This document shows, piece by piece, positions 1,671-62,096 of a stretch of DNA of 64,000 nt. This DNA comes from Basidiobolus meristosporus CBS 931.73. Its lineage: Eukaryota > Fungi > Basidiobolomycota. Numbering within the stretch: the first letter of the stretch is position 1; the number at the start of each line of letters is the position of its first letter. A program made the translations under genes and the position numbers. Below the pieces are notes generated by a model, which was not told the origin of the DNA, did not search any database, and was given only the letters and a program-made list of their open reading frames with translations. The DNA lies in NCBI GenBank assembly GCA_002104905.1, contig MCFE01000203.1:62001-126000 (forward strand), in the 5' to 3' direction.

Positions 1671-3447
1671 GGGTGCAAGTGTGACCTTGTACTTGGTAGA
1701 ACCTGGCTATTTTGTTGTAATCCATCAGTCAACTGGAGAACCCATGCAGCTCAGATCCTGAAGGACAGCTAGATCTATGAGCTATTACATGCCAGACTGG
1801 ATTTTAACTTGGTCAATTCCAGTGTGTGCAAGACAAGTGAGCTTAGCAAGACACAGTTCTGTAGAGCACTTAGAAAAGGCATCCAGATGTTCTTCATGGC
1901 AGTATTACAGGAGGATTTCTCTACTCCAGTACCCCTGCAAGGTTAAGACTTGTTTGAAGAAATATTAAGATGTATTTCCAGATGAGCTTGTAAGCCTACC
2001 ACCAGTCAGAGATGTGGATCATACCATTGACACAGGAGATAGCCCCCTAGTGAGTAAGACACCTTACAGAATGAGTCCATTGGAGTTGGAAGCAATGAAG
2101 AGACAAATAGATCAGTTACTGGAGCAAGTATAGACCAGACCCAGCAAGTCACCTTGGGGAGCACCAGTACTCTTTGTGAAAAAAATGGATGGAACACTCA
2201 GAATGTGCGTCAACTACAGAGCCCTCAACTCAGTTACTGCAAAGAATAAGTACCCCCTACCTTGGATTGATGAGCTTTTGGACCAACTCAATGGAGCCAC
2301 TAAATTCAGCAAGATTGACCTCATGACAGGATACAATCAGATTGGATGAAGCCAGAAGACATCCCTAAGACAGCATTCAGGACCAGATATGGACACCACA
2401 AGTACGTAGTCATGAGTTTTTGCCTCACCAATGCCCCTGCAACATTCATGACCCTGATGCAGACTGTCTTACAGGAGTACTTAGACAAGTTTGTCATAAT
2501 ATACCTAGATGATATATTGATATGCAGCAAGACAGAAGAGGATCACTTGGTGCACATTGACAAGGTCTTGAAGAAACAAAGAGAGAACAAGCTTCATGGC
2601 AAGCTACCCATGTGTGAATTTTTCAAGGAACACAATGAACATCTGGGACACATAATGACTAGCACAGGAGTTACCTTAGACCCTAAGAAGCCTGAAGTTA
2701 TCAAGAATCTGAAGCAGCCCCATAGCGTATCAGAGCTCAGATCATTCCTTGGAATGGTTTCCTGCTATTGAAGATTTGTCAAGTCCTTTGATCATGCCTC
2801 CCTCAAGTATATGTTTACTCAGAAGCAATTTGCTTAGAGATTGTCTACTGGCCTGGAAAAAACAATATGGTAGCTGATGCTTTATCAACATTAGAAAAAG
2901 TTGCACAACTAAACTTCGTGTATGAATTATATTGGCCTAGCCTAATGCCAAAGTACCTGGAGGACCTGGCCATTCCTATTAAGGTGGATGAAGAGATCAA
3001 GAAGATAATCCAGGATGAAGCCAGCAAGTTTGTAGTACAGGATGAAACACTCTACCAAATTGTTAATGGAAGCCCTTTTGCCTATTGCCCTTATGTTGCT
3101 TGCCGGGATTTAACACATAAGCTTCACAATGGATATGAACATCTTGAAATTGAAGGAGCCTATAGCCTTGAGAAAGCCAGAGCATGGTGGCCCTGAATGA
3201 AGAATGACATTGAGAAGCTAGTTAAGACATGCCCAAATTGCCAAATCAACCAAAGTCAACCACAGAAAATTGCTGAGCTCTTTCCCTTGGAGCCTGTAAG
3301 ACCATTTGAAAGATGGGGAATTGACTGTATTGGAAGACTGCCAACCACCAGGAAATGCAACACTTGGATCCTAGTAGCAACTGACCATGCCACTAAATGG
3401 CCAGTGGTCAAAGCTGTACCTATAGCCAGTGAACAAGAAGTTCCAAG
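1671..3447 (+). mobile_element. Degenerate Ty3/Gypsy pol fragment (protease tail, RT, partly deleted RNase H, integrase N-terminus)
   Basis: Motifs: DLVLGRTWL..NPSVNW (protease end), [45 protein letters not shown] (RT), zinc-finger CPNCQ, PFERWGIDCIG (integrase). Multiple stops and frameshifts. Confidence 0.92.
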
Positions 3448-3585
3448 TACACATATCAGCTAACATGATTGACTTTATTCAAAGTTGTAGGCATTGAGTA
3501 ATTTAGGTGATGCAAAACCAGCACAGTACAACTTGCAGCACTGGCAATTGCTAATTCTAGCTGTGGGCACTTTAGGCTACCCAAC

Positions 3586-4017
3586 TCAGCAGCAGTCATC
3601 ATAGCAATCATCCCAGCATGGGTCACAGCAATCATCATAGCAAGGATCATAGCAGGGATCACAGCAAGGGTCACAGCAAGGATCACAGCATGGGTCACAG
3701 CAAGGATCACAGCATGGGTCACAGCAGGGATCACAGCAGGGATCACAGCAGTCATCATAGCAAGGATCATAGCAAGGATCACAGCAGGGATCCCAGCAAT
3801 CATCATAACAAGGATCATAGCAGGGATCCCAGCAATCATCATAACAAGGATCATAACAGGGGTCACAGCAATCATCATAGTCATAGGATGAGTAGCCTCT
3901 CTTCTGAACTTTACTGGTACCTGCAGCAGCCTGACCATGGGGAAGGGAGAGTGTGGTTCCAAGGAAAAGGACACCAAGAACAGTGGCCAGTGAGAGATTG
4001 CTGAAAGAGAACTTCAT
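3586..4017 (-). CDS. Secreted Cys/Asp-rich tetrapeptide-repeat protein, copy A (143 aa)
   Basis: ATG at 4017 (the ORF-track start at 4074 is a TTG). Signal peptide MKFSFSNLSLATVLGVLFLGTTLS, pro-region ending VQKR (Kex2-type site), then GYSSYDYDD, 23 x C[CYW]D[PD], and CC-stop. Confidence 0.75.
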   Translation of the reverse strand: MKFSFSNLSLATVLGVLFLGTTLSLPHGQAAAGTSKVQKRGYSSYDYDDCCDPCYDPCYDDCWDPCYDPCYDDCWDPCCDPCYDPCYDDCCDPCCDPCCDPCCDPCCDPCCDPCCDPCCDPCYDPCYDDCCDPCWDDCYDDCC

Positions 4018-4192
4018 TTTAGCTAAAAGAAAGAGATGAGTTTTTATGGGAAGACCACTAATAAGTTGAGGCAAGATTGGATGATGCTATACCAGTGCTG
4101 ACCATTTGGACTTAAATACATTTTCTCCTTGCCAGTCATCCCCACTAATAGTGCCTCCAATATATTTCCATGACACTGAGATCACTATAGTC

Positions 4193-4264
4193 CCATCAGT
4201 AAATCAGGCCCAGCTGCCATCAGTAAATCAGGCCCAGCTGCCATCAGTAAATCAGGCCCAGCTG
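4193..4264 (+). repeat. 24-bp tandem repeat x3 (CCATCAGTAAATCAGGCCCAGCTG)
   Basis: Three exact units read directly from the sequence. Copy B retains only a partial first unit before the LTR. Confidence 0.9.
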
Positions 4265-4780
4265 CCATGCCATCACTTTGATTGTCTTGGTAGCCCACCT
4301 TAGCATTATCATATTTGCCATGAGATCTATCAGTAGTGATATCTGGCAGTTGGGTTTAGAGCTGGGCCTCAGTGCTTCAGGTGCAGGGTTCAATTCCCAG
4401 CAGCTCCATAATCCTGGCAGAAATGAAGGTCAATCAGTAGTGTAAAAGTAGGCTGGTTTGCAAGAATTTTTTAAACCACAGCCTGATTTTTGTTGCCCCT
4501 ACCCAAGTAAAAGTTGGTATATGCTGACTAACCCTAAACAGCAGCTTACTTTTTTGTACTCCACTTGTTTATGCCCTGTTCATGGGAGAGTGCTTGATGA
4601 ATAAGAGCCATATGCTGATCCCTGAAATCATAATCCATCATATACACATATCAGCTAACATGATTGACTTTATTCAAAATTGTAGGCATTGAGTAATTTA
4701 GGTGATGCAAAACCAGCACAGTACAACTTGCAGCACTGGCAATTGCTAATTCTAGCTGTGGGCACTTTAGGCTACCCAAC

Positions 4781-5212
4781 TCAGCAGCAGTCATCATAGC
4801 AATCATCCCAGCATGGGTCACAGCAATCATCATAGCAAGGATCATAGCAGGGATCACAGCAAGGGTCACAGCAAGGATCACAGCATGGGTCACAGCAAGG
4901 ATCACAGCATGGGTCACAGCAGGGATCACAGCAGGGATCACAGCAGTCATCATAGCAAGGATCATAGCAAGGATCACAGCAGGGATCCCAGCAATCATCA
5001 TAACAAGGATCATAGCAGGGATCCCAGCAATCATCATAACAAGGATCATAACAGGGGTCACAGCAATCATCATAGTCATAGGATGAGTAGCCTCTCTTCT
5101 GAACTTTACTGGTACCTGCAGCAGCCTGACCATGGGGAAGGGAGAGTGTGGTTCCAAGGAAAAGGACACCAAGAACAGTGGCCAGTGAGAGATTGCTGAA
5201 AGAGAACTTCAT
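4781..5212 (-). CDS. Secreted Cys/Asp-rich tetrapeptide-repeat protein, copy B (identical protein)
   Basis: Offset 1195 bp from copy A; the ORF-track translations are identical. Confidence 0.75.
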   Translation of the reverse strand: MKFSFSNLSLATVLGVLFLGTTLSLPHGQAAAGTSKVQKRGYSSYDYDDCCDPCYDPCYDDCWDPCYDPCYDDCWDPCCDPCYDPCYDDCCDPCCDPCCDPCCDPCCDPCCDPCCDPCCDPCYDPCYDDCCDPCWDDCYDDCC

Positions 5213-5406
5213 TTTAGCTAAAAGAAAGAGATGAGTTTTTATGGGAAGACCACTAATAAGTTGAGGCAAGATTGGATGATGCTATACCAGTGCTGACCAT
5301 TTGGACTTAAATACATTTTCTCCTTGCCAGTCATCCCCACTAATAGTGCCTCCAATATATTTCCATGACACTGAGATCACTATAGTCCCATCAGTAAATC
5401 AGGCCC

Positions 5407-5751
5407 TGTTGTAAAAATTCGTATTTTCCACCTAAATATTCACCTAACTTAGTCACTTAGATCATCATCTTCAAATCCTAGAGAATACTGACCAAATTCC
5501 TTGTCGGGATTTACTTAGAATATTTTCACAAATACCAGGTACCCAGAACATGAAAATTCTCAAGTTGTCCAAACAGCCCAAACTTTGCACACATGTTCTT
5601 GGGACCTTCCTTAACCTATTCTACGTGTTGTAATGCCAAGACCATGTAAAAGTATAAATACTACTTTTACATTCAATAAATCATGAAGTGAAAACCACAT
5701 AATCTACTTGTTCTCCCAATCACTTCCAATATCTCCAAGACTCTTACAACA
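5407..5751 (+). mobile_element. Solo or truncated Copia-family LTR (345 bp)
   Basis: Terminal inverted repeat TGTTGTAA...TTACAACA, with internal TATAAATA and AATAAA. Closely similar to the PPT-adjacent LTR at 61748-62096. No PPT immediately upstream. Flanks GGCCC/GGCCA may be an imperfect target-site duplication. Confidence 0.9.
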
Positions 5752-5809
5752 GGCCAACCCTAACCCTAAATTGGTATGATATTGAAGAGTATCTGTTACC
5801 CTAAGTACT

Positions 5810-8996: not shown

Positions 8997-10630
8997 ATGG
9001 TGAAAGCACACAGTTTACTGGCCTTTTTCGCTACTGCAGCCATCCTTGGCCTCTCCGATGCCAAAGGAAGCAAGCCTAACTTCCTCGTTTTCCTGATGGA
9101 TGACCAGGATTTGAAGATGGACTCTCTAACGCTACATGCCACGCGTACACAAATACATTACCACTCAGGGAACTTCATTCAATCATCACTACATCTCCAC
9201 CGCCATCTGTTGTCCTTCGAGAGTCTCATTCTGGACCGGGCAATTCCCGCATAACCACAACGTAACCGACGAGTCACCACCGCACGGAGGCTATCCGAAG
9301 TTTTTGTCGAGACAGTTGGACAGTAACTACCTTCCGTTGTGGTTGGACCAGGCTGGCTACTCCAACTACTATCTTGGAAAATTCATCAACGGGGTTGACG
9401 CCAGAAACCCTGGGCCTCCGAAAGGCTGGACCCACTTCGAGCCGCTTGTGGCACCATGGATTTATCAATATTTAAACCCGACATTCTCCCTCAACGGTGC
9501 TCCTTTTGAGGCGCACGATGGCGAGTATCAGACCGATGTTATCCTCAACAAAACCTTGAACATCCTAGATACCCTAGCTTCGTCTGACAAACCATTCCTG
9601 TTCACAGTCTCTCCTGTGGCCCCGCATGATACTGTGACGGTGAACACCAACTCAGGTGCCGCCGAGTTCTATCCTCCGGTGCCCGCCAAGCGCCATGAGG
9701 CGTTGTTCAAAGATCTGAAGGTCCCCCGGAAACCCAACTTCAATCCCAAGCATCAGGACAAACCCTCTTGGTTGAAAACCCTGCCTTACCTGAACCAAAC
9801 CCGGCTCGATGACCTTGACGAACACTATCGACTACGCATTAGATCCCTTCAGGCCGTCGATGAGTTGGTGGAGAAGGTGATCAAGAAACTTGAGAAGCAA
9901 GGGCAACTTGATAACACCTACATCATCTACACCACTGACAATGGATACCATCTTGGACATCATCGCTTAGGCGCTGGTAAAGGAACTCCGTATGAGGAGG
10001 ATGTGAACATTCCCTTCATTATTCGCGGACCAGGGGTTGCCAAAGGAGAGATTAGTAAGGCATTCACCACACATACCCACGTTGCGGCGACTATTTTGGA
10101 CCTTGCCGGACTACCTGTTCCTGCACATCTGGATGCCTCGCCCATGCCAGTGCTGAGGAGACCACACACGAAGTACGATGTCACCGAAGCGTTCAACGTG
10201 GAGTTCTGGTCCAATACCTTTTTCGAGGACACTTGGGAACGCTTCTCCAACAACTCTTACAAAGCGGTTAGAGTCATCGGAGACGGCTACAACTACTATT
10301 ACTCCACCTGGTGTACTGGCGAACATGAATTAGTATGATCTGCAAGAGGACCCCTACCAACTTCACAACATCTATCCTCGCGTAGTGCACAAGGATGCTA
10401 GACTACTTGACCGTCTCAACGCTCTTTTGAATGTACTTAGAGACTGCCAAGGAGACACCTGTCGCCATCCTTGGGGAGTACTCCATCCTGATGGCTCAGT
10501 TAGAAATCTCAAGCAGGCACTCAGAAGTCGGCATGATTCGTACTACGCCGGATTGCCGGTATGGAAATTCATCACCTGCAAGGTGTTCAATGATCGTACC
10601 AACGAAGTATTGGTCAAGAAAGGCCATTAG
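8997..10630 (+). pseudogene. Secreted arylsulfatase / N-acetylglucosamine-6-sulfatase-like gene split by two +1 frameshifts (pseudogene or assembly error)
   Basis: Signal peptide, KPNFLVFLMDDQD, formylglycine motif CCPSRVSFWTG, YYLGKFING, YTTDNGYHLG, GKGTPYEEDVNIPFIIRGPG, ELYDL..DPYQLHN. Extra bases at about 9130-9132 and 10332-10333. No introns. TATAAAA at about 8953. Confidence 0.85.
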
Positions 10631-15354: not shown

Positions 15355-18300
15355 TAGACCAAGGAATTGAAATAAACCATCACGATTCTCAATTGCATAC
15401 GTAGCACGCGTATCCATTGTTGTGCCACGCAAAGTGTTCATCCTAAATGAGATGATGTTACTGATGTGCCTGCAGAGTATCATCAGTCGACGAAAACTCT
15501 AATGACCGGATTCCCAGTGATAGACTGGGGATGGGAATGGCAGCCCGGTAGCTGGTTACACCAGCTCCGATTTGGTCATTTCAAGAAGCAATCACAAGAG
15601 TGATGATGAATATTTGAGTGTGCGAACGGAGTACGAAACCGCATCTGTGGGCAAGAACTGATTCATCATATCAAGAAAATCCCCTTCGCCCAGAGAAATA
15701 TCACTCATGTGAAAATATTCGAGTATTGCGCATGTACAGAGTCTGTAGAACCTCGCTAGTATAAATACATACATCTGAGGATCAGCAGCAGCATTCCCCG
15801 CCTATCTCCTATCACATTCATCGTATCATGAAGTCCTCGACCGCCTTCCTTGCTCTGGCCTCCTCTATCCTGGCTGTGAACGCTTGCGATTCCGAGTGGC
15901 TCCAACGTAAGATCACCCTCCAGGGGCTTCTAAGACACACCAACAACTTCCAGAAGTTCGCCAATGCTCACAACCACACCCGCGTGTTCGGCAGTGAAGG
16001 CCATCAGAAGACCGTCGACTACATCCATGGGATTGTCAAGAACGCGGGATACGATGTAACCATCCAGGAGTTCACTGCTCCTTATTCCGAAACATTGGCA
16101 CAGAAGCTTTCCGTGAACGGCAAGGAGTACGATATCCAGGCAATGACCCTGACTGCCTCCACACCTGAAGGCGGATTGACCGCTCCACTTGTTCTTGTCC
16201 CCGATGTCGCCGGTGAGAAGGGCTCGGCTGGATGTGAAGATGGAGACTTCGCTGGTCTTGATCTCAAAGGGAAGATTGCCTTGGTCGAAAGAGGCTCCTG
16301 CGCATTCAACAACAAATCCTTGAATGCCGGTAAGCTTGGCGCCGTTGCTACCATTGTGTACAACAACGCAGCTGGTGACCTGAAGGGAACCCTCGGTGCT
16401 GAGGATACTTCCAAGATCCCCACCGGTGGCATCAGTCAGGAATCCGGAAAGGCGTTGATCGAGCTGCTGAAGAAGGGTGAAGTCAAGGCAGCCTTGAATT
16501 TGGTGGAACTCAATGAGGTTCGTTCCACCTACAACGTGATTGCTGAGACTAAGGGTGGAGATGCATCCAAGGTCGTCATGCTTGGCGCTCACTCCGACTC
16601 TGTCCAAGCTGGCCCTGGAATCAACGACAACGGGTCAGGAAGCGCAGCCCTTCTCGAACTAGCCTACCAGTTCCGCAACGTCAAGCCTAAGAACAAGGTT
16701 CGTTTCGCATGGTGGTCAGCCGAGGAGTTCGGACTCCTTGGATCGGAGTACTACGTCAGCAAATTGCAAAAGACCGACATTGCCAACATCGCGGTGATGC
16801 TCAACTTCGACATGATTGCCTCGCCAAACTACGTGATCCGTATTTACAACGGCGATGAGAGCGGCCAACCTGTGCCAGCTGGCTCTGAAGTTGTCACCAA
16901 ATTGTTCGAGGATCACTTCAAGGCTAAGAAAATCACCTATCTCAGTGAGCCAGCTCCCTTTGACCGTACCGATATTGGACCTTTCTCCGCTGTAGGCATT
17001 CCATCTGGAGGCTTGGAAACTGGCGCCGAGAAGCTGAAGACTGAGGAAGAAGCCAAACTGTTTGGTGGTAAGGCTGGCGAGCCATATGACAAGTGCTATC
17101 ACCTTGCTTGTGATACCACTGCCAACCTTGCCCACAAAGCATTCTTGATCAATGGCCGCGGTATCGCTCACGCAGTGGCAACCTACTCCCAAGATGTCTC
17201 CACCGTAGCAGCCGCTCGTGGTGGCCCAGCCAAGAAGACCAAAAGAGGAGTGGCCCCAATCAGCCATGGATCAGGAGGCTGCACCTTACCAAAAGCATAA
17301 CTAGCATCGCTAAAGTAAATACCTTCAACTGAGACAGCTCATCCTACCATCCACTATTGTGGAAAATTTTGTAATAAAATCCAGCATAAATACCCTGATT
17401 CTCAGTAACAGCAGGGAGGTCGTACCGAACTGTGGGGTGTATCATCAATATATGTGGCATCGAATTACCCTAATTTCACTCCCGTCCAGTTGCTTGGCCT
17501 ATGGTCACCTATTGCTGGAGATCAAGGACCATATTGTTACTCTGAATACCAGCCAGGTTAACAGAATTGGCTTGTACTCGGCATGCAGACCTGTGACCCA
17601 TTTTGCTTACCTAATTGGTATTGAGCATAGCCCCGTACGAAGCTCGGATCTGAAGACGAACCAAATCGAGAGAGTTTGGAACCTTCCCGTATGAGACTGG
17701 TCGATTGATGGTGGTAGTTATGGATGCCAATGTTTGGCTCAAAAAAGCTACGGAATCAGAGACGAGAGAGGTTACATCTGAGACTCAGGTTCTACATTCG
17801 ATTGATAGCGAAGGCACGCCAGCAGGTAAACGATCCAAGATGCCCTGTTCCACAATCAAGCCAAGAAAGAATATTATGTCAGAGAGTCAAAGGCATGTTT
17901 TCATTAATGATCTCCCCAAATTGGCGAAACCGTGCGAGTGTTGGGCACGCTAGCTCGGTAATTGACAGTACGTACATCAGATAGGACGGTCAGTCGGTAA
18001 CATAATTCAACCGCCTTATTCAGTTTACATATTTTCTGATGTGCCATATCCATTCCCATTTGCTTAGCGAAAAAACGCTGAACAGACCAGGGAATTGAAG
18101 TAAACCATCACGATTCTGTATTGCCTACCAAACCCACTTGTCCATTGTTGTGCCACGCAAGGTGTTCATCCTAAATGAGATGATGTTACTGATGTGCCTG
18201 CAGAGTATCATCAGTCGACGAAAACTCTAATGACCGGATTCCCAGTGATAGACTGGGGATGGGAATGGCAGCCCGGTAGCTGGTTACACCAGCTCCGATT

Positions 18301-18547: not shown

Positions 18548-20020
18548 ATGAAGTCCTCGACCGCCTTCTTTGCTCTGGCCTCCTCTATCCTGGCTGTGAA
18601 CGCTTGCGATTCCGAGTGGCTCCAACGTAAGATCACCCTCCAGGGGCTTCTGAGACACACCAACAACTTCCAGAAGTTCGCCAATGCCCACAACCACACC
18701 CGCGTGTTCGGCAGTGAAGGCCATCAGAAGACCGTCGACTACATCCATGGGATTGTCAAGAACGCGGGATACGATGTAACCATCCAGGAGTTCACTGCTC
18801 CTTATTCCGAAACATTGGCACAGAAGCTTTCCGTGAACGGAAAGGAGTACGATATCCAGGCAATGACCCTGACTGCCTCCACACCTGAAGGCGGATTGAC
18901 CGCTCCACTTGTTCTTGTCCCCGATGTCGCCGGTGAGAAGGGCTCGGCTGGATGTGAAGATGGAGACTTCGCTGGACTTGATCTCAAAGGGAAGATTGCC
19001 TTGGTCGAAAGAGGCTCCTGCGCATTCAACAACAAATCCTTGAATGCCGGTAAGCTTGGCGCTGTTGCTACCATTGTGTACAACAACGCAGCTGGTGACC
19101 TGAAGGGAACCCTCGGTGCTGAGGATACTTCCAAGATCCCCACCGGTGGCATCAGTCAGGAATCCGGAAAGGCGTTGATCGAGCTGCTGAAGAAGGGTGA
19201 AGTCAAGGTAGCTTTGAATTTGGTGGAGTTCAGAGAGAATCGTTCCACCTACAACGTGATTGCCGAGACTAAGGGTGGAGATGCATCCAAGGTCGTCATG
19301 CTTGGCGCTCACTCCGACTCTGTCCAAGCTGGCCCTGGAATCAACGACAACGGGTCAGGAAGCGCAGCCCTTCTCGAACTAGCCTACCAGTTCCGCAACG
19401 TCAAGCCTAAGAACAAGGTTCGTTTCGCATGGTGGTCAGCCGAGGAGTTCGGACTCCTTGGATCGGAGTACTACGTCAGCAAATTGCAAAAGACCGGCAT
19501 TGCCAACATCGCGGTGATGCTCAACTTCGATATGGTTGCTTCTCCAAACTACGTAATCCGTGTATATAACGGTGATGAAAGTGGACAGCCTGTGCCAGCT
19601 GGTTCCGAAGTCGTCACCAAATTGTTCGAGGATCACTTCAAGGCCAAGAAGATTTCATATGTGAGCGGTGTATTTCCCTTCAGTCGCTCAGATGTTGGAC
19701 CTTTCGCAGCAGCTGGCATCCCATCGGGAGGTTTGGATACTGGCGCCGAGAAGCTGAAGACTGAGGAAGAAGCCAAACTGTTTGGTGGTAAGGCTGGCGA
19801 GCCATATGACAAGTGCTATCACCTTGCTTGTGATACCACTGCCAACCTTGCCCACAAAGCATTCTTGATCAATGGCCGCGGTATCGCTCACGCAGTGGCA
19901 ACCTACTCCCAAGATGTCTCCACCGTAGCAGCCGCTCGTGGTGGCCCAGCCAAGAAGACCAAGAGAGATGTAGCACCAGTTCATAATGGATCGGGTGGAT
20001 GCTCCCTCCCCAAAGTGTAA
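18548..20020 (+). CDS. Secreted M28 aminopeptidase with PA domain, copy 2, 490 aa
   Basis: Near-identical paralog of 15828-17300 with the same intact motifs. Confidence 0.93.
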   Translation: MKSSTAFFALASSILAVNACDSEWLQRKITLQGLLRHTNNFQKFANAHNHTRVFGSEGHQKTVDYIHGIVKNAGYDVTIQEFTAPYSETLAQKLSVNGKEYDIQAMTLTASTPEGGLTAPLVLVPDVAGEKGSAGCEDGDFAGLDLKGKIALVERGSCAFNNKSLNAGKLGAVATIVYNNAAGDLKGTLGAEDTSKIPTGGISQESGKALIELLKKGEVKVALNLVEFRENRSTYNVIAETKGGDASKVVMLGAHSDSVQAGPGINDNGSGSAALLELAYQFRNVKPKNKVRFAWWSAEEFGLLGSEYYVSKLQKTGIANIAVMLNFDMVASPNYVIRVYNGDESGQPVPAGSEVVTKLFEDHFKAKKISYVSGVFPFSRSDVGPFAAAGIPSGGLDTGAEKLKTEEEAKLFGGKAGEPYDKCYHLACDTTANLAHKAFLINGRGIAHAVATYSQDVSTVAAARGGPAKKTKRDVAPVHNGSGGCSLPKV

Positions 20021-30105: not shown

Positions 30106-30670
30106 GTTCACATTATAATCAATGTATTGAAGTATATCTGAATATTTTAATAAATCCCGGTCTTTTGGTTAGATTGTGTATATGTGTCATCGATATAATG
30201 TAGATTCTTGAGGCAACACATTGTAGTGCATGGTTACTGCTTCTAGCATACTGAATGCCATCTCGGATAATTTTCACACCCCACAATCACATTTCCTGTC
30301 TTATTCACCAATACTAGAGGGTGTGGGAAGAGGAGCAATGCTAGATAGATTCTCAACCTTCGGAAGTACTTACATTATCCGGTGACATGATAAAGTAATC
30401 TAAACTAAATCCGAAGGCCAAGTAGTTATAACTTGGATATAATCAATAGCCCCTCATTGCTAAGCAACAGCCCTCAAACATTGGTGACGAATGGGATAGT
30501 TGTGGATGAATACCCATATATGGGTTATTTACCCAGAGTGGATACATCGGTTAATTTGGATTCAGGTCCTGTAATTTCATGAGTTGTAAAATAAATAGCA
30601 CCCAGTTGCTACTCCCGAATCATCAACCACTCATTTGCAAGTGTGCAAGCAAGCATCAACATTCCTTTCA

Positions 30671-31390
30671 ATGTCCGCTCAGTCAACTACCAAGATATCC
30701 ATCATCCTCTACACCGTCTATGGCCACATCTATGAGCTGGCCAAGGCTATCAAGAAAGGTCTGGAAACGAATAACGGAGTGGTAGCCACCATCTACCAAG
30801 TGCCAGAGACACTCTCTGATGACATCCTCGCCAAGATCCATGCCCCGCCTAAGCCCGATATCCCAGTGATCACTCCTGACATGCTCACCGAGGCTGATGG
30901 CTTCTTCTTTGGCATCCCCACCAGATTTGGGGCCATGCCAGCTCAGTTCCAGCAGTTCTGGGATGCCACGGGCGCACTCTGGGCCCAAGGAGCACTCCGC
31001 AACAAGTTCGCAGCCACCTTCTTCTCCACTGGCTCACAACATGGAGGACAGGAGACAACAGCAATGACATTCATGACCACTGTTGTCCACCATGGAATGA
31101 TCTACATCCCCAATGGATTCGCATCACCACACTTGACTGACAACTCTGAGATAGTTGGCGGAGGACCATGGGGAGCAGGAACCATCACGAATGGAGATGG
31201 ATCACGAATGCCATCTCAGAAAGAGCTGGAAGTGGCCGAGCTACAGGGACAAAACTACGGAGAGATTGTGGTGCGTCATACTCAACCTCAGTTGGTGGAG
31301 AGAGTCGTCGAGAAGATCGTGGAGAAGCAGGTGCCATCTAAGGCAAATGCGGTGACCAAAAAGTCATTCTTCAAAAAACTCTTTGCCTAA
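30671..31390 (+). CDS. Flavodoxin-like NAD(P)H:quinone oxidoreductase (WrbA/Pst2/Ycp4 family), copy 1, 239 aa
   Basis: YTVYGHIYELA (FMN P-loop), QVPETL, GIPTRFG, GALRNKFAATFFSTGSQHGGQETT, HHGMIYIP, GGGPWGAGT, DGSRMPS..ELE.A..QG. Confidence 0.93.
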   Translation: MSAQSTTKISIILYTVYGHIYELAKAIKKGLETNNGVVATIYQVPETLSDDILAKIHAPPKPDIPVITPDMLTEADGFFFGIPTRFGAMPAQFQQFWDATGALWAQGALRNKFAATFFSTGSQHGGQETTAMTFMTTVVHHGMIYIPNGFASPHLTDNSEIVGGGPWGAGTITNGDGSRMPSQKELEVAELQGQNYGEIVVRHTQPQLVERVVEKIVEKQVPSKANAVTKKSFFKKLFA

Positions 31391-32290
31391 TACGTGAACC
31401 CTACTACGCATTTATGTAACCTTTCACCCGATTGCCATCCAGCTTGATTTCCGTCATATTACCTCAGTGATGAATTGGACGTGTACACTGATAACCTTAC
31501 CTATGTTTACTATTGAGCTTCCGATTCTCCTATACTAATTCGGGAGGTTGCTGCTGAGCTGCGCGTACCAAGAAATGTAGTATATAATAAACCTAGTAAC
31601 CATCGCACTGCTATTGAATTGCCGTGTTAACTATGTTCCATGGATTTGGGGCCAAATGGCGTAAACTCAAACCAACAACAATTACCAACTGTGAATATGT
31701 AGCATAACTGACAGAAACATTGATCCCCACCTTTAACCTACCTCTTTCGGCAACTTACCTATCCCTGACGGAATGACTTTACTTTTCATAACAGTATGGT
31801 GGCCATGGTAGTGAACTGGGGCTCAAAACTGCATTTTGCACCCATCCTCCTGCGTGGATTGCAAGCAGTCGCCTTCCATATCGTTGCCACCACATTGGAT
31901 ACATACTCTTGACCCACCGTGTATACATAGTTGTTCAGATTCTGAGGAATTCTTAGGGCCTCAACAGACTAGTTTGGATTTGGAACACTTGATCTAGAAT
32001 AACTGTGGCGTCTGAACAAACCATCACCAAAATCATTGAAACAAGTGTGCCATACAGAGAAGATATGATTAATATGGCCGGAGGGGTGCTTACTAACCCC
32101 TGATGGTAAGTAATCTATTTGAAAGTACAAACGGAGATATTACCATATATGGCTCATTTACCCAAGATCGATGGATTCCACCATTAGAAATTGATGCGTG
32201 AGATGGCAAAATAAATAGCACCCAGTTGCTACTCCCGAATCATCAACCACTCATTTGCAAGTGTGCAAGCAAGCATCAACATTCCTTTCA

Positions 32291-33011
32291 ATGTCCGCTC
32301 AGTCAACTACCAAGATATCCATCATCCTCTACACCGTCTATGGCCACATCTATGAGCTGGCCAAGGCTATCAAGAAAGGTCTGGAAACGAATAACGGGGT
32401 GGTAGCCACCATCTACCAAGTGCCAGAGACACTCTCTGATGACATCCTCGCCAAGATCCATGCCCCGCCTAAGCCCGATATCCCAGTGATCACTCCTGAC
32501 ATGCTCACTGAGGCTGATGGCTTCTTCTTTGGCATCCCCACCAGATTTGGGGCCATGCCAGCTCAGTTCCAGCAGTTCTGGGATGTCCACAGGCGCACTC
32601 TGGGCCCAAGGAGCACTCCGCAACAAGTTCGCAGCCACCTTCTTCTCCACTGGCTCACAACATGGAGGACAGGAGACAACAGCAATGACATTCATGACCA
32701 CTGTTGTCCACCATGGAATGATCTACATCCCCAATGGATTCGCATCACCACACTTGACTGACAACTCTGAGATAGTTGGCGGAGGACCATGGGGAGCAGG
32801 AACCATCACGAATGGAGATGGATCACGAATGCCATCTCAGAAAGAGCTGGAAGTGGCCGAGCTACAAGGACAAAACTATGGGGAGATTGTGGTGCGTCAC
32901 ACTCAACCTCAGATAGTGGAGAGAATTGTGGAAAAGATCATTGAGAAGGAAGTACCAGATAGAGCCAAGGTGAGCAGAAAAAACTCGTTCTTCAAGAAAA
33001 TCTTTGCCTGA
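32291..33011 (+). pseudogene. Flavodoxin-like quinone reductase copy 2, with a +1 frameshift (extra T at 32586)
   Basis: GGGATGTCCACAGG here vs GGGATGCCACAGG in other copies. The two ORF-track halves overlap at this point. Confidence 0.85.
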
Positions 33012-33200
33012 AACTGTACTTATGGTCATGAAGAGCTAACTTAAACCTTGTATTGTACTGACAGTAATATTTTCTAACCCCACTATTTTTTGTTCCAACT
33101 GTATAATTTTATGCCATGCAATAAACATAGAAAATTAAACGGAACTCTGTGCTAAAGTTCTCTTATGGCTCACAAATTCCTCAAGTATTATGAGCTACCA

Positions 33201-33220
33201 ATATATATATATATATATAT
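33201..33220. repeat. (AT)10 microsatellite
   Basis: Read directly from the sequence. Confidence 0.95.
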
Positions 33221-33862
33221 CAGCTGCCTGGCTGCCTGAATGAAGTGTTACGAAGGGAAAGCTTCAAAGCTAGGTCCTCTTGCGTCGTATTTAAACATAT
33301 GAATTCATAAATCTATAGTAAGCGTGCTCCACTACAAGAAACGTCGGGGAACCTGTCCTTAAGCGGCTAATGATGGAGTTTTGTGCGACTATCTACACCT
33401 GTATTTCTCAAATTTAATGTAGCGGTTAGCGGAGGCATCCACCTTGATGATCGCTGTTGTCAAACATGTGGGTGGTTTATTATAGCCGTGAAAACATCTA
33501 GGGAAGCACCGTAATTGTCATTAATTTATTGCTAAGCAACAATCCACAATCTGTAGTGATAAATTGGAATAGTAGTGGAAAAATTCAGAGGCCAAGTATT
33601 TGTAACTTCAACAAAATCAATAGCCCCTCATTACGGAGCAACGGCACACAAATATTAGTGACGAACTGAGATGGTTGTGGATGAATAGCCATATATGGGT
33701 TATTTACCCATCACGGATACATCGGTTAATTTGGATTCAGGTCCTGAGGAAGGTTGACCATTTCGTAATAAATACCACTTGCAGGCTCTACGCTGTGTCA
33801 TACAATCACTCAAATTGATAGTTCAGCACCTACATTCGACTATTCCATATCTTTACTACGCA

Positions 33863-34582
33863 ATGACAGTACAATCCAAGACTAAGGTTTTCATCATCCT
33901 CTACACCGTCTATGGCCACATCTATGAGCTGGCCAAGGCTATCAAGAAAGGTCTGGAAACGAATAACGGAGTGGTAGCCACCATCTACCAAGTGCCAGAG
34001 ACACTCTCTGATGACATCCTCGCCAAGATCCATGCCCCGCCTAAGCCCGATATCCCAGTGATCACTCCTGACATGCTCACCGAGGCTGATGGCTTTTTCT
34101 TTGGCATCCCCACCAGATTCGGGGCCATGCCAGCTCAGTTCCAGCAGTTCTGGGATGCCACAGGCGCACTCTGGGCCCAAGGAGCACTCCGCAACAAGTT
34201 CGCAGCCACCTTCTTCTCCACTGGCTCACAACATGGAGGACAGGAGACAACAGCAATGACATTCATGACCACCATCGTCCACCATGGAATGATCTACATC
34301 CCCAATGGATTCGCATCACCACACTTGACTGACAACTCTGAGATAGTTGGCGGAGGACCATGGGGAGCAGGAACCATCACGAATGGAGATGGATCACGAA
34401 TGCCATCTCAGAAAGAGCTGGAAGTGGCCGAGCTACAAGGACAAAACTACGGAGAGATTGTGGTGCGTCATACTCAACCTCAGTTGGTGGAGAGAGTCAT
34501 CGAGAAGATCGTGGAGAAGCAGGTACCATCTAAGACCAATACAGCGGTCAAGAAGTCATTCTTCAAAAAACTTTTTGCCTGA
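33863..34582 (+). CDS. Flavodoxin-like quinone reductase copy 3 (distinct N-terminus MTVQSKTKVF)
   Basis: Same core motifs; intact ORF. Confidence 0.92.
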   Translation: MTVQSKTKVFIILYTVYGHIYELAKAIKKGLETNNGVVATIYQVPETLSDDILAKIHAPPKPDIPVITPDMLTEADGFFFGIPTRFGAMPAQFQQFWDATGALWAQGALRNKFAATFFSTGSQHGGQETTAMTFMTTIVHHGMIYIPNGFASPHLTDNSEIVGGGPWGAGTITNGDGSRMPSQKELEVAELQGQNYGEIVVRHTQPQLVERVIEKIVEKQVPSKTNTAVKKSFFKKLFA

Positions 34583-35354
34583 CATATGAATCAGACAATA
34601 CAATTGTGTAACCTTTCAATCAACGGCTCCTGGCCAAAATCAAGTCTTAATTACATCAGTATTCAACCGGTCTTGAATACTGATAACCTTACCAGTCTTT
34701 ATTATCTAATATTGAATCTTCGGACTCAGAATCAGGATGTTGAGACTAAATTAAAAGCAACAAGCAGTATAGAATATAATAAATATAATGGCGATTATAA
34801 TAACCACGTTAAAAGAGTTATATTAAGGTTGTTGGGCCAGACGAGGTAGGCTCGGAATAGCAACGACTATAACTTAACCGTAACTCCAAACTTTATTGTA
34901 AGTTAGCTCTTTGCATGCATGTCATTCGGTGTGAGTTGCTCATAGTCGCTTGTAGATTTTAGACTGGCTGTTGACTAGCTCTATCTGGAAAGCTACTAGA
35001 GATTCGGAGTATTCCCTCAAAGAACTCATCAATCTAGGTTGGGCGCTTGATTAATGATAGACAGAGATACTGTCTTCAAATAACTAAAACTGATATGTAC
35101 ACATAGATTTGAATTTAGATGCGGTTAATATGTTTGCAAGGATGCTTACTAACCTCTGATGGTAAGTAATCTATTTGAAAGTACAAACGGAGATATTACC
35201 ATATATGGCTTATTTACCCAAGATCGATGGATTCCACCATTAGAAATTGATGCGTGAGATGGCAAAATAAATAGCACCCAGTTGCTACTCTCGAATCATC
35301 AACCACTCATTTGCAAGTGTGCAAACAAGTAAGCAAGCATCAACACTCCTTTCA

Positions 35355-36074
35355 ATGTCCGCTCAGCCAACTACCAAGATATCCATCATCCTCTACACCG
35401 TCTATGGCCACATCTATGAGCTGGCCAAGGCTATCAAGAAAGGTCTGGAAACGAATAACGGAGTGGTAGCCACCATCTACCAAGTGCCAGAGACACTCTC
35501 TGATGACATCCTCGCCAAGATCCATGCCCCGCCTAAGCCCGATATCCCGGTGATCACTCCTGACATGCTCACTGAGGCTGATGGCTTTTTCTTTGGCATC
35601 CCCACCAGATTTGGGGCCATGTCAGCTCAGTTCCAGCAGTTCTGGGATGCCACAGGCGCACTCTGGGCCCAAGGAGCACTCCGCAACAAGTTCGCAGCCA
35701 CCTTCTTCTCCACTGGCTCACAACATGGAGGACAGGAGACAACAGCAATGACATTCATGACCACTGTTGTCCACCATGGAATGATCTACATCCCCAATGG
35801 ATTCGCATCACCACACTTGACTGACAACTCTGAGATAGTTGGCGGAGGACCATGGGGAGTAGGAACCATCACGAATGGAGATGGATCACGAATGCCATCT
35901 CAGAAAGAGCTGGAAGTGGCCGAGCTACAGGGACAAAACTACGGAGAGATTGTGGTGCGTCATACTCAACCTCAGTTGGTGGAGAGAGTCATCGAGAAGA
36001 TCGTGGAGAAGCAGGTGCCATCTAAGGCAAATGCGGTGACCAAAAAGTCATTCTTCAAAAAACTCTTTGCCTAA
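35355..36074 (+). CDS. Flavodoxin-like quinone reductase copy 4 (substitutions GAMSAQ and GPWGVG)
   Basis: Same core. The 3' end and downstream spacer duplicate those of copy 1. Confidence 0.92.
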   Translation: MSAQPTTKISIILYTVYGHIYELAKAIKKGLETNNGVVATIYQVPETLSDDILAKIHAPPKPDIPVITPDMLTEADGFFFGIPTRFGAMSAQFQQFWDATGALWAQGALRNKFAATFFSTGSQHGGQETTAMTFMTTVVHHGMIYIPNGFASPHLTDNSEIVGGGPWGVGTITNGDGSRMPSQKELEVAELQGQNYGEIVVRHTQPQLVERVIEKIVEKQVPSKANAVTKKSFFKKLFA

Positions 36075-36981
36075 TACGTGAACCCTACGACGCATTTATG
36101 TAACCTTTCACCCGATTGCCATCCAGCTTGATTTCCGTCATATTACCTCAGTGATGAATTGGACGTGTACACTGATAACCTTACCTATGTTTACTATTGA
36201 GCTTCCGATTCTCCTATACTAATTCGGGAGGTTGCTGCTGAGCTGCGCGTACCAAGAAATGTAGTATATAATAAACCTAGTAACCATCGCACTGCTATTG
36301 AATTGCCGTGTTAACTGTGTTCCATGGATTTGGGGCCAAATGGCGTAAACTCAAACCAACAACAATTACCAACTGTGAATACGCAGCACAACTGACACAA
36401 ATATTGATCCCCACCTTTAATCTACCTCTTTCGGCAACTTACCTATCCCTGACGGAATGACTTTACTTTCATAACAGTATGGTGGCCATGGTAGTGAACT
36501 GGGGCTCAAAACTGCATTTTGCACCCATCCTCCTGCGTGGATTGCAAGCAGTCGCTTTCCATATCGTTGCCACCACATTGGATACATACTCTTGACCCAC
36601 CGTGTATACATAGTTGTTCAGATTCTGAGGAATTCTTAGGGCCTCAACAGACTAGTTTGGATTTGGAACACTTGATCTAGAATAACTGTGGCGTCTGAAC
36701 AAACCATCACCAAAATCATTGAAACAAGTGTGCCATAGAGAGAAGATATGATTAATATGGCCGGAGGGGTGCTTACTAACCCCTGATGGTAAGTAATCTA
36801 TTTGAAAGTACAAACGGAGATATTACCATATATGGCTTATTTACCCAAAATCGATGGATTCCACCATTAGAAATTGGTCCGTGAGATGGCAAAATAAATA
36901 GCACCCAGTTGCTACTCCCGAATCATCAACCACTCATTTGCAAGTGTGCAAACAAGTAAGCAAGCATCAACACTCCTTTCA

Positions 36982-37701
36982 ATGTCCGCTCAGTCAACTA
37001 CCAAGATATCCATCATCCTCTACACCGTCTATGGCCACATCTACGAGCTGGCCAAGGCTATCAAGAAAGGTCTGGAAACGAATAACGGGGTGGTAGCCAC
37101 CATCTACCAAGTGCCAGAGACACTCTCTGATGACATCCTCGCCAAGATCCATGCCCCGCCTAAGCCCGATATCCCAGTGATCACTCCTGACATGCTCACT
37201 GAGGCTGATGGCTTTTTCTTTGGCATCCCCACCAGATTTGGGGCCATGCCAGCTCAGTTCCAGCAGTTCTGGGATGCCACAGGCGCACTCTGGGCCAAAG
37301 GAGCACTCCGCAACAAGTTCGCAGCCACCTTCTTCTCCACTGGCTCACAACATGGAGGACAGGAGACAACAGCAATGACATTCATGACCACTGTTGTCCA
37401 CCATGGAATGATCTACATCCCCAATGGATTCGCATCACCACACTTGACTGACAACTCTGAGATAGTTGGCGGAGGACCATGGGGAGCAGGAACCATCACG
37501 AATGGAGATGGATCACGAATGCCATCTCAGAAAGAGCTGGAAGTGGCCGAGCTACAAGGACAAAACTATGGGGAAATTGTGGTGCGTCTTACGCAGCCCC
37601 AAGTAGTGGAGAGGGTAGTGGAGAAGATCGTGGAAAAGCAAATCAAGGAAAAGGTAAAGTTCGTTGAGAAGAAATCATTCCTGAAGAAAATATTCTCCTA
37701 G
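36982..37701 (+). CDS. Flavodoxin-like quinone reductase copy 5
   Basis: Same core; divergent tail QIKEKVKFVEKKSFLKKIFS. Confidence 0.92.
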   Translation: MSAQSTTKISIILYTVYGHIYELAKAIKKGLETNNGVVATIYQVPETLSDDILAKIHAPPKPDIPVITPDMLTEADGFFFGIPTRFGAMPAQFQQFWDATGALWAKGALRNKFAATFFSTGSQHGGQETTAMTFMTTVVHHGMIYIPNGFASPHLTDNSEIVGGGPWGAGTITNGDGSRMPSQKELEVAELQGQNYGEIVVRLTQPQVVERVVEKIVEKQIKEKVKFVEKKSFLKKIFS

Positions 37702-38445
37702 CCTTGTCGAATATACATTTGTGTAAAGCCGTTGCATTCATATTGGCGATATTGGGAAACTGAATTTGTATGCCATTATGCTCGAACTTGTAAGAATAGT
37801 AATAATTAATAAAACTTATATGATACTTTGCCCGCGTAAGTCAATTCGAATGCGGGTTCTTTATATCGGAACTTAACGGAGCCTTGAATCGGCCAAGGAA
37901 CTTTTTAATGGAAACTTGGATGATCACAGGTGTTAAAAGTAAGCATAAAGCTTGAATCCTATTTCCATTCTTAGATCACGACTCAACTACATACCTTCGG
38001 CTAAAGAGTAGATCGCTTGGGAGTTTAACAGTATATAGATATATACGGTAGTTCTGCCGGTAACCCCAGATTAGAATGCATTGCAACACGAGCATCCCAT
38101 GAAGCGTGAAAGATAAGATTCAATGGCGGAGCTTTGTCAAACATCTTGCATCAAGGTTATCCGGAAAAATAACCTAGCTTAGGATGATTATGCATAAAAT
38201 CATTACGAAGTATGCTACTAACTTCTCGGTTGATGCACACATTCGACTGCGTGCGACAAGGGGAAGTGTTATATCGGGCCAATTTAACCAGATCTATAGC
38301 TATGCTTTGGAAATCCGGAGATACAACTTGTCGTTATATGTACTTTATCCATCGCCATTGCTAAATAGGTATGCACCCTCAGAAAAGAAAATATCGATTT
38401 TATATGTATCATGAGCACACAATCAAAATCAAATGTATGATCACA

Positions 38446-38830
38446 GGCCCAAGGAGCACTCCGTGACAAGTTCGCAGCCACCTTCTTCTCCACTGGCTCA
38501 CAACACGGAGGACAGGAGACAACAGCGATGACATTCATGACCACCGTTGTCCACCATGGAATGATCTACATCCCCAATGGATTCGCATCACCACACTTGA
38601 CTGACAACTCTGAGATAGTTGGCGGAGGACCATGGGGAGCAGGAACCATCACGAATGGAGATGGATCGCGAATGCCATCTCAGAAAGAGCTAGACGCGGC
38701 CGAGCTACAAGGTCAATACTATGGGGAGGTTGCGGTGCGTCACATTCAACCTGAGATTGTGAAGTGAGTGGTCGAGAAATAAAATAGAAGTACCAGCCGA
38801 AAATCAGTCCAGAAGAAACTCTTTGCATAA
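38446..38830 (+). pseudogene. Flavodoxin-like copy 6, 3' half only, with decayed tail
   Basis: Homology begins abruptly at GGCCCAAGGAGCACTCCG; premature stop at 38765-38767. Confidence 0.85.
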
Positions 38831-39340
38831 GGCGCTACTCCTGATCTTCACCGGTCGATAAAAGACCATTTATCAAGGAAGATGGCATTAAAGAAAGCGC
38901 CTAATATGGCCGAATTGTCGGGCGGAAAGTCATTTCTTAAGGTAACTCGAAACCATGTGCGCTGATAACCTTGTTGACACCTTGGCGGTGACCAATTTGA
39001 ATAGATCACATACACAAGCATCTACTGATGAACTCGACCGGTCCTATTTCAAATTTTCTTCCATTATTTGGGATGGATCCCGCAATCAACGCGCTTGGGC
39101 GCCTCACATGCTTTACATGAAAACTACATACATCCAGTATCGAATTTCATGTTGGGATATTTAAGGAACACATGTGATTATGAGCGGTGAAAATACCATA
39201 ACTATCCGTACTTGTATCAGTTCATGTAGAACTTCACCCCTGGTCGGATGTAATCAATGAGGAACTCCCCCGTATTTGGTCAGTTTATCTATCTAGATTA
39301 GATGAATTCAAGTAACCATATTGGTAGATATGTTAGCCCT

Positions 39341-39548
39341 ACAACAGCAATGGCATTCATGACCACCATCGTCCACCATGGAATGATCTACATCCCCAAT
39401 GGATTCGCATCACCACACTTGACTGACAACTCTGAGATAGTTGACGGAGGACCATGGGGAGCAGGAACCATCGCGATCAGAAAGAGATACAAGGTCAAGA
39501 CTACGGGTAAATTGTAGTCCGTCATATTCAACCCCAGATGGTGGAGGA
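39341..39548 (+). pseudogene. Flavodoxin-like copy 7, internal fragment
   Basis: TTAMAFMTTIVHHGMIYIPNGFASPHLTDNSEIVDGGPWGAGT followed by a deletion and decay. Confidence 0.8.
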
Positions 39549-40121
39549 AGCAAATATGGGAAGAGTGGACCTTCTGAAGTCATCCCTCTAAAATCAACAC
39601 ACACCATCATTGTCAACTAAGGATTATCCTTGAACACCAGTAAAGCCTTCATACTTACTAATCCATGTTGGACCTCGGAAAAAATCTAAAAATGGACACA
39701 TCTGATTATTTTTGTGATGAGCAACCCCATCATTCATATGATATCGGAAAGCCACTTCGCACAATTCTTTTCAGTATGGATACTTGCGTTAGGCAGAGAA
39801 TTCTCTTTCTAGGTGTGATACTCTTTCTATATCGATCTAGTAGACGGTCTATGAGTCAACACTGAATATCAAGCGTGAATGCCAATTTGTAATGATATCC
39901 AAATGCGGGATATTTATCCAGCGAAATCTCGCCGAAGAGTATTTGCAATCCTTTTCGGTTGATTAGTAACGAATCTAGGATGATCCTTAACACTTGGAAA
40001 TGAAATAAATACCGCTTCATAGCACCTACCTCCTACATCGAATTTTGATTGCTGCATCTTTTGCTTTATACCTTTCCCTTTGCAAATACATTAACGTCCT
40101 CCTAGTGTGACTTATTGCGTA

Positions 40122-40841
40122 ATGGCCGTCGAACCAAAGACCAAGATTTACATCATCCTTTACACCGTCTATGGCCATATCTACGAAGTGGCCAAGGCTG
40201 TCAAGAAAGGAATTGAGAAAAATGAACGAGTAGAAGTCACCATCTACCAAGTGCCAGAGACACTCTCTGATGACATCCTCGCCAAGATCCATGCCCCACC
40301 TAAGCCCGATATTCCAGTGATCACTCCTGACATGCTCACCGAGGCTGATGGCTTCTTCTTTGGCATCCCCACCAGATTTGGGGCCATGCCAGCTCAGTTC
40401 CAGCAGTTCTGGGATGCCACGGGCGCACTCTGGGCCAAAGGAGCACTCCGCAACAAGTTCGCAGCCACCTTCTTCTCCACCGCCTCACAACATGGAGGAC
40501 AGGAGACAACAGCAATGACATTCATGACCACCGTTGTCCACCATGGAATGATCTACATCCCCAATGGATTCGCATCACCACACTTGACTGACAACTCTGA
40601 GATAGTTGGTGGAGGACCATGGGGAGCTGGTACTATTGCCAACGGTGATGGATCCAGAATGCCATCTCAGAAAGAGCTGGAAGTGGCCGAGCTACAAGGA
40701 CAAAACTACGGAGAGATTGTGGTGCGTCATACTCAACCTCAGATTGTGGAGAAAACCGTGGAGAAGGTGGTAGTGAAAGAGGTGCCGGCTCAGGCTGAAG
40801 TAACAAAGAAGAAATCGTTCTTGAAGAAAATCTTCAACTAA
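40122..40841 (+). CDS. Flavodoxin-like quinone reductase copy 8 (most divergent N-terminus, MAVEPKTKIY)
   Basis: Intact ORF with the same core (STASQHGG variant); tail KKKSFLKKIFN. Confidence 0.92.
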   Translation: MAVEPKTKIYIILYTVYGHIYEVAKAVKKGIEKNERVEVTIYQVPETLSDDILAKIHAPPKPDIPVITPDMLTEADGFFFGIPTRFGAMPAQFQQFWDATGALWAKGALRNKFAATFFSTASQHGGQETTAMTFMTTVVHHGMIYIPNGFASPHLTDNSEIVGGGPWGAGTIANGDGSRMPSQKELEVAELQGQNYGEIVVRHTQPQIVEKTVEKVVVKEVPAQAEVTKKKSFLKKIFN

Positions 40842-61715: not shown

Positions 61716-61747
61716 CTTGATTTAGGGTTAGGGGGGAGACAGCTACC

Positions 61748-62096
61748 TGTTGTAAGAGTCTTGGAGATATCGGAAGTGATTGGGAGAACAAGTAGATTAT
61801 GTGGTTTTCACTTAATGATTTATTGAATGTAAAAGTAGTATTTATACTTTTACCTGGTGTTGGAATTACAAACATGTAGAATAGGTTAAGGAAGGTCCTA
61901 AGAACATGTGTGCAAAGTTTGGGGCTGTTTGGACAACTTATCAAATTTTCATGTTCTGGGTACCTGGTATTTTGGTGAAAATATTCTAAGTAAGTCCTGA
62001 CAAGGAATTTGGTCAGTATTCTCTAGGATTTGAAGGTAATGATCTAAGTGACTAAGTTAGGTGAATATTTAGGTGGAAATACAAATTTTTACAACA
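61748..62096 (-). mobile_element. 3' LTR (349 bp) of the Copia element
   Basis: TGTTGTAA...TTACAACA termini, directly preceded on the minus strand by the polypurine tract GAGTGGGAG (62105-62097). Confidence 0.95.

Follow-up and report, generated by a model that had tools for sequence, protein, structure and literature searches.

We analysed 64,000 nucleotides (nt) of the Basidiobolus meristosporus CBS 931.73 genome (assembly GCA_002104905.1, contig MCFE01000203.1, positions 62,001 to 126,000 of the forward strand; hereafter the window) and found two minus-strand open reading frames (ORFs), at 3586-4017 and 4781-5212, with identical coding sequences, which encode a predicted secreted protein built of Cys/Asp-rich tetrapeptide units. 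To judge from the sequence, each copy is most likely a real orphan gene with a single exon, belonging to a young family that is restricted to its lineage and arose by growth of a 12-nt minisatellite, and we put the probability that a protein is produced in the Cys/Asp frame at about 0.7. Further, we tentatively propose, by analogy, that the Kex2-processed polyanionic chain is a component of an extracellular coat, wall or glue cross-linked through disulfides and tyrosines, a role to which we give somewhat less than even odds.

Structure of the gene pair and its predicted product

Each ORF is 432 nt long and consists of 143 codons plus TGA, giving a product of 143 amino acids (aa) without an intron. 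The enclosing minus-strand open stretches run from 3586 to 4074 and from 4781 to 5269, with the first ATG at 4017 and 5212, respectively; in copy 1 the start codon (4017-4015) is this first ATG and has an A at -3, and in the Cys/Asp frame the stop codon sits exactly where the repeat ends. An earlier note on this DNA had reported the two ORFs and a mature chain of 103 aa with 36 Cys and 32 Asp, and our recomputation from the ORF list and the translations returned the same strand, coordinates and counts.

The N-terminus resembles a signal peptide (aa 1-24; 3946-4017 in copy 1 and 5141-5212 in copy 2, minus strand), with Lys2 in the n-region, an uncharged hydrophobic core at aa 8-25 in which the 9-residue Kyte-Doolittle means reach 2.6, and then a stretch of small residues; a predicted signal cleavage after aa 24, with T-L-S at -3 to -1, is plausible. 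The call relies on the hydropathy profile and on a crude signal-peptide rule applied to the ATG-started ORFs of at least 60 aa in the window, which was passed by two of 134, namely the two Cys/Asp copies. A pro-segment follows (aa 25-40; 3898-3945, and 5093-5140 in copy 2) and ends in Lys39-Arg40, the single dibasic site of the protein, beyond which there is no basic residue. The preference of Kex2/furin proteases for Lys-Arg is well established, and we therefore predict cleavage after this pair. The secretory prepro layout proposed in the earlier note, a signal peptide and a short pro-peptide ending in Lys-Arg, was thus seen again in our profile and translation.

The predicted mature chain of 103 aa (3589-3897, and 4784-5092 in copy 2) has the composition C36, D32, P17, Y12, W3, S2, G1 (Cys 35%, Asp 31%) with no Lys, Arg or His, a computed mass of 11.8 kDa and a net charge of about -32.6 at pH 7. 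Its 17 acid-labile Asp-Pro bonds follow a strict period of four residues, it has neither an N-glycosylation site nor a glycosylphosphatidylinositol (GPI)-type tail, and AlphaFold gave no confident fold for the protein (predicted local distance difference test, pLDDT, 46.6). A GPI anchor was dropped as a candidate for want of a hydrophobic tail, and a sulfatase formylglycine-type C-x-P-x-R motif was dropped for want of the Arg.

The 12-nt repeat and the coding frame

The repeat at 3589-3870 consists of 23 units of 12 nt plus a terminal Cys-Cys (23.5 units), reported by Tandem Repeats Finder (TRF) as period 12 with 22.8 copies, and translates to the consensus C-[C/Y/W]-D-[P/D]. There are eleven CCDP, five CYDD, four CYDP and two CWDP units and one CWDD unit; eight pure CCDP units (units 11-18) form the centre, the CYDP-CYDD pair occurs four times and gives a 36-nt higher-order pattern, and the mature chain holds 12 adjacent Cys-Cys pairs. 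The 23 units, their origin from a 12-bp DNA repeat, the eight central CCDP units and the CYDP-CYDD pattern had all been described before, and TRF and translation agree on them. The further statement that the 103-aa chain is made of consecutive units stood for the 23 units and failed for the chain as a whole: 94 of the 103 residues belong to the repeat proper, and the first nine (G-Y-S-S-Y-D-Y-D-D) resemble units that have decayed.

Across the repeat, four of the six frames are open, and these differ in how they treat the variation between units. In the Cys/Asp frame 12 distinct DNA units encode five peptides, and 49% of the pairwise codon differences between units are silent, vs 0%, 0% and 17% in the other open frames. 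Variable positions number seven of the 12 in the unit and include all four third positions, and the eight central units vary at third codon positions only. Moreover, among the open frames the Cys/Asp frame alone has the first ATG, a signal-like start, a TATA-like box and an AATAAA. The TATA-like motif TATTTAAG lies about 95 nt 5' of the ATG (4111-4118; 5306-5313 in copy 2) and the AATAAA motif about 107 nt past the stop codon (3474-3479; 4669-4674 in copy 2), all on the minus strand. The non-repetitive 5' part contributes 49 open codons, in which the first ATG after the TATA-like box, the signal-like segment and the Lys-Arg all stand in one frame.

Duplication and transposon flanks

BLAST self-comparison revealed a duplicated block of 764 bp on the minus strand, at 3448-4211 and 4643-5406, which includes 194 bp 5' of the ATG, the coding sequence and 138 bp of 3' flank, with 99.87% identity; the only mismatch, at 3484, falls in the 3' untranslated part. 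This agrees with the duplication claimed previously. The TATA-like box and the AATAAA both lie within the block, whose homology ends 26 nt beyond the AATAAA. The start-to-start period is 1195 bp, and the spacer of 431 bp (4212-4642) is present in one copy only, so that the locus amounts to 1.64 units.

Fragments of transposable elements (TEs) cut the unit at both ends. On one side a gypsy-type reverse transcriptase/integrase fragment on the plus strand (2346-3447; RVT_1 E 5e-14, Integrase_H2C2 E 9e-4) breaks off at 3447, directly at the start of unit 1; on the other side a long terminal repeat (LTR) of 347 bp with TGTTG...CAACA ends (5407-5753) interrupts unit 2 inside a 24-bp repeat. A second, inverted copy of this LTR was found at 61746-62096 (94% identity). 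Since both ends are cut in this way, the gene pair is what TE truncation has left of a tandem array with units of about 1.19 kb, and it does not lie within a transposon. A location inside a TE, which the earlier note had named as a finding that would speak against its reading, was therefore not encountered: the TE fragments flank the unit, and the unit lies outside them. An origin as a retrocopy was dropped, there being no poly-A tract at the block end.

Other features of the locus include a perfect tandem repeat of 24 bp x 3.2 at 4193-4268, 175-250 bp 5' of the copy-1 ATG, most of which lies in the spacer; copy 2 retains just part of one 24-bp unit because the LTR cut in. This repeat could be an upstream regulatory repeat. 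A TTAGGGTTAGGG dimer precedes each LTR copy by 5-13 nt on the LTR's own strand (5758-5769 and 61722-61733), and this region may represent a telomere-repeat-like polypurine-tract region. The spacer also holds, at 4358-4407 (plus strand), a tRNA-like T-arm remnant with a sub-threshold Rfam match (mascRNA-menRNA, E 0.39); ARAGORN called no tRNA there, and with Rfam nothing reached the gathering score, the matches near the locus being sub-threshold noise. A bacterial-type promoter/terminator scan was run on the window and is uninformative for a eukaryote.

Search for relatives

No Pfam family matched at E<=0.01. At E<=10 the sole match was MSSP (E 0.21), which is meaningless, and the metallothionein, Keratin_B2 and hydrophobin models were unmatched. 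The PDB sequence search returned nothing beyond the NANP/NVDP repeats of the Plasmodium circumsporozoite protein, with which the shared period-4 Asx-Pro is coincidental, and word-index searches with all three open ATG frames gave compositional matches only. When 1.84 billion representatives were scanned in full with phmmer, 833 matched, and of these we inspected the best 150: these matched in the repeat only, through low-complexity period-4 Asp-Pro or Cys-rich stretches of long proteins; none had Cys and Asp both above 25% in any 80-aa window, and none shared the prepro segment, for which weaker prepro-only matches could rank below the best 150. The ESM Atlas gave no usable match, and of 309 pattern matches in a JGI metagenome scan tblastn confirmed none. 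A literature search (CCDP repeats, Basidiobolus Cys-rich secreted proteins, Kex2 with Cys/Asp-rich repeats) found no such protein described. The absence of a recognisable family, as asserted from the sequence earlier, therefore held in every one of these searches, with protein databases being blind to unannotated copies in other fungal genomes.

Among the search matches, CC[K/D]P or CYDP modules occur at the N-termini of surface-type proteins, such as an OmpA-like barrel protein (P0003, from precomputed Pfam domains), a SpaA/SdrD-B domain protein (P0044) and the Gly/Tyr-rich P0002 and P0007 (nematode). The metagenomic P0001, P0003, P0004, P0005 and P0044 share with our protein runs of Cys-Cys-Asp-Pro-Cys and Cys-Tyr-Asp-Pro-Cys, and differ from it in that their modules are short, mixed with Lys/Glu/Asn and joined to folded domains, with no prepro region. 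We regard these modules as probably convergent, compositional look-alikes. Four of the metagenomic proteins (P0001, P0004, P0005, P0162) form a conserved family of about 240 aa, whose N-terminal CC[K/D/N]P repeats lead into a well-conserved C-terminal domain; this domain matches BclA_C below threshold only. A BclA-like C-terminal fold for this family was set aside, as the AlphaFold result on the four sequences was unusable (pLDDT 30.4); a PDB search with P0001 gave no match.

Proposed role of the Cys/Asp chain

We infer the transcription, secretion, Kex2 cleavage, cross-linking and location of the Cys/Asp product, and the tentative model of a cross-linked extracellular material would run as follows. 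The product would enter the endoplasmic reticulum (ER) by means of its cleavable signal peptide, a Kex2-type protease would trim it after Lys39-Arg40 in the Golgi, and the 103-residue chain, a series of C-[C/Y/W]-D-[P/D] turns with a charge of about -32, would be exported and would act as bulk material and not as a folded domain. A chain with 36 Cys should become oxidised on its passage through the ER, and the Cys would form disulfides between units and between chains, which are favoured because the adjacent residues of the 12 Cys-Cys pairs cannot easily bond together. In addition, the 12 Tyr would permit oxidative cross-links, and the 32 carboxylates might link the network to Ca2+ or to cationic partners, for example wall polymers and Lys-rich secreted proteins, the end product being an insoluble coat, wall or glue of spores or hyphae. 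The lack of a confident fold, of a GPI tail and of an N-glycosylation site would agree with such a material-like character, and the tandem amplification fits that of high-dosage structural genes.

Alternative explanations

Several observations weigh against a translated gene with the role proposed here. The hypergeometric P for the third-position pattern is about 0.07, suggestive rather than decisive. The G+C content at third codon positions is 0.42, vs 0.50-0.61 in seven neighbouring genes, and Tyr is encoded by TAT in 92% of cases, vs 35% in neighbouring genes; this bias would fit Tyr codons recently derived from TGT and is not what one would expect of a gene that is highly expressed and long established. 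The locus lies in TE debris, the two copies are uninformative on selection because they differ by only one non-coding base, and the protein searches found no orthologue to show purifying selection. Moreover, an exact look-up in a collection of 15 billion proteins found no ORF of any frame from this locus, the same-contig permease and both M28 peptidase genes being present there. The structural role, for its part, is argued by analogy only. The four open frames across the repeat, the want of a public model and of relatives, the atypical codon usage and the TE fragments on both flanks would fit an untranslated ORF, a by-product of a 12-nt minisatellite open in several frames within a recently duplicated TE-rich segment. 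We take this explanation seriously and still consider it unlikely: the openness of the 49 non-repetitive 5' codons alone has, by our own estimate, a chance of about 0.1, and these codons bring the ATG, the signal-like segment and the Lys-Arg together in one frame, whereas none of the 132 other ORFs is signal-like; the silent variation is specific to the Cys/Asp frame among the open frames, and the TATA-like box and AATAAA lie inside the unit. Two other frames come into question, a hydrophobic one on the minus strand (160 aa, ATG at 3938) and a plus-strand one rich in His, Ser and Lys (128 aa, 3618-4004), but it is very improbable that either gives the true product. Both start with an ATG and are of similar length, but their silent inter-unit differences are 0% and 17%, neither has a signal-like start or uses the first ATG past the TATA-like box, and neither is found for this locus in the public protein collection. 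RNA-seq data of B. meristosporus CBS 931.73 exist (PMC7466969).

If the protein is produced in the Cys/Asp frame, functions other than a cross-linked material come into view. The chain might stay reduced, or be reduced in the anoxic gut, and serve as a secreted metal/electrophile sponge, an exported counterpart of metallothionein or phytochelatin that would bind Cu, Zn and Cd by thiolate clusters and hard cations by Asp. In keeping with this, the chain is small, has no confident fold by itself and is 35% Cys, its CC and C-x-x-x-C spacings alternate with carboxylates, and the acidic, Cys-rich frustulins bind Ca2+, chelation of Cd also being reported for them (PMC4557024). However, the metallothionein Pfam model was unmatched even at E 10, and in the scanned neighbouring ORFs we recognised no metal-homeostasis gene. 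Disulfides are favoured in the oxidising ER, and 15 aromatic residues are unusual for metallothioneins. We rate a sponge as unlikely, a little below the untranslated ORF. We hold with more doubt a variant in which the protein is a ribosomally made, secreted phytochelatin-like polythiol-polycarboxylate that would act whole, or be released as Pro-Cys-Cys-Asp at the 17 Asp-Pro bonds in the vertebrate gut, and outside the cell would trap metals, or quench electrophiles and oxidants. A precursor of small peptides, cut by gut acid at Asp-Pro or by a protease into short oligomers or single P-C-[C/Y/W]-D tetrapeptides, is improbable. The strict 4-residue period of the Asp-Pro bonds and the Kex2-type leader, such as fungal peptide precursors have, speak for it; against it, Asp-Pro hydrolysis is slow at physiological temperature, dibasic sites between the units are absent, unlike in Kex2-processed repeat (KEP) proteins and dikaritins, and the ORFs scanned around the locus included no tailoring gene of the UstYa or tyrosinase type.

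Comparison with known systems

Ultra-high-sulfur keratin-associated proteins consist of Cys-Cys-X-Pro-X repeats, are encoded by arrayed genes and form a matrix cross-linked by disulfides. Like the Cys/Asp gene, they have about one third Cys, CC followed by x-Pro in short tandem units, and genes in tandem. Unlike it, they have no signal peptide, are cross-linked inside dying cells, are neutral to basic, have a pentapeptide unit and are restricted to animals, while the Cys/Asp chain has a secretory start, a charge of about -32 and a tetrapeptide unit, and gives no Keratin_B2 match at E 10. The other structural parallel is found in diatoms, where the frustulin ACR and pleuralin PSCD domains belong to extracellular wall proteins and are acidic and Cys-rich, the PSCD domain being also rich in Pro and Asp (PMC4557024). 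These domains differ in that they are 50-90 aa long within glycoproteins of 30-200 kDa and have a far lower Cys/Asp density; they were not recognised among the best 150 of the 833 phmmer matches or among the Pfam matches, with no reference sequence compared directly.

The earlier note had set the protein apart from metallothioneins, hydrophobins and KEP/dikaritin precursors, and composition, Pfam and the single Lys-Arg lead us to the same separation. Metallothioneins and phytochelatins are also small, with about 30% Cys and CC motifs, and the alternation of thiols and carboxylates recalls (gamma-Glu-Cys)n. However, metallothioneins are cytosolic, have no signal peptide and usually lack aromatic residues, and phytochelatins are made by an enzyme, whereas the Cys/Asp protein has a signal-like N-terminus and 12 Tyr plus 3 Trp in 103 aa. 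Hydrophobins have eight Cys in a C-CC-C-C-CC-C pattern in about 100 hydrophobic aa, compared with 36 Cys at period 4 and 31% Asp here. Kex2-processed repeat proteins and dikaritin (ustiloxin-type) precursors share the signal peptide, the Lys-Arg and the short tandem repeats with our protein, but carry Lys-Arg between the units, where the Cys/Asp protein has one Lys-Arg ahead of the repeat. UstYa (DUF3328) or tyrosinase neighbours were not found among the larger ORFs scanned; the immediate flanks are the gypsy fragment and the LTR, and the nearest genes to the locus are those of the sulfatase, the Nma111-like protease and the M28 peptidases. Plasmodium circumsporozoite NANP/NVDP sequences also form a period-4 Asx-Pro repeat, but without Cys and without homology; from this likeness it is a reasonable guess that the backbone is a string of turns.

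If expressed, the product would be among the most extreme natural Cys/Asp polymers on record, with two thirds of the mature residues being Cys or Asp at a strict four-residue period. To our knowledge, no metallothionein-like or keratin-matrix-like protein is exported. Such a product would represent a new type of building block for the fungal extracellular matrix, or else a new extracellular route of metal handling, and the gene pair would illustrate clearly how a minisatellite can give rise to a gene that is then amplified. It also shows that ORFs of this kind escape gene callers, and therefore secretome surveys of early-diverging fungi under-count them.

Genomic surroundings

The genes of the window look fungal, with no sign of human DNA, and include an Nma111-like protease, M28/PA peptidases, an amino-acid permease and a GAF hybrid histidine kinase. 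Two M28 peptidase genes carrying a PA domain lie in tandem at 15828-17300 and 18548-20020 and share 95% protein identity, and a tandem array of ORFs of about 251 aa of the flavin mononucleotide (FMN)-reductase/flavodoxin type (WrbA/Pst2-like) extends from 30635 to 40841. In the sulfatase gene (8997-10338) the ORF layout appears to consist of a short, signal-peptide-bearing first exon (from 8997), an intron and then the main ORF; this apparent split suggests that the genome has introns, the Cys/Asp gene being without one. Both copia and gypsy elements are present in the window, with copia-type RVT_2 fragments at its two ends (279-1772 and 62108-63968), and the first 8 kb are low-GC TE debris, with a GC content of 0.37-0.44 vs 0.45-0.53 in the gene-rich part.

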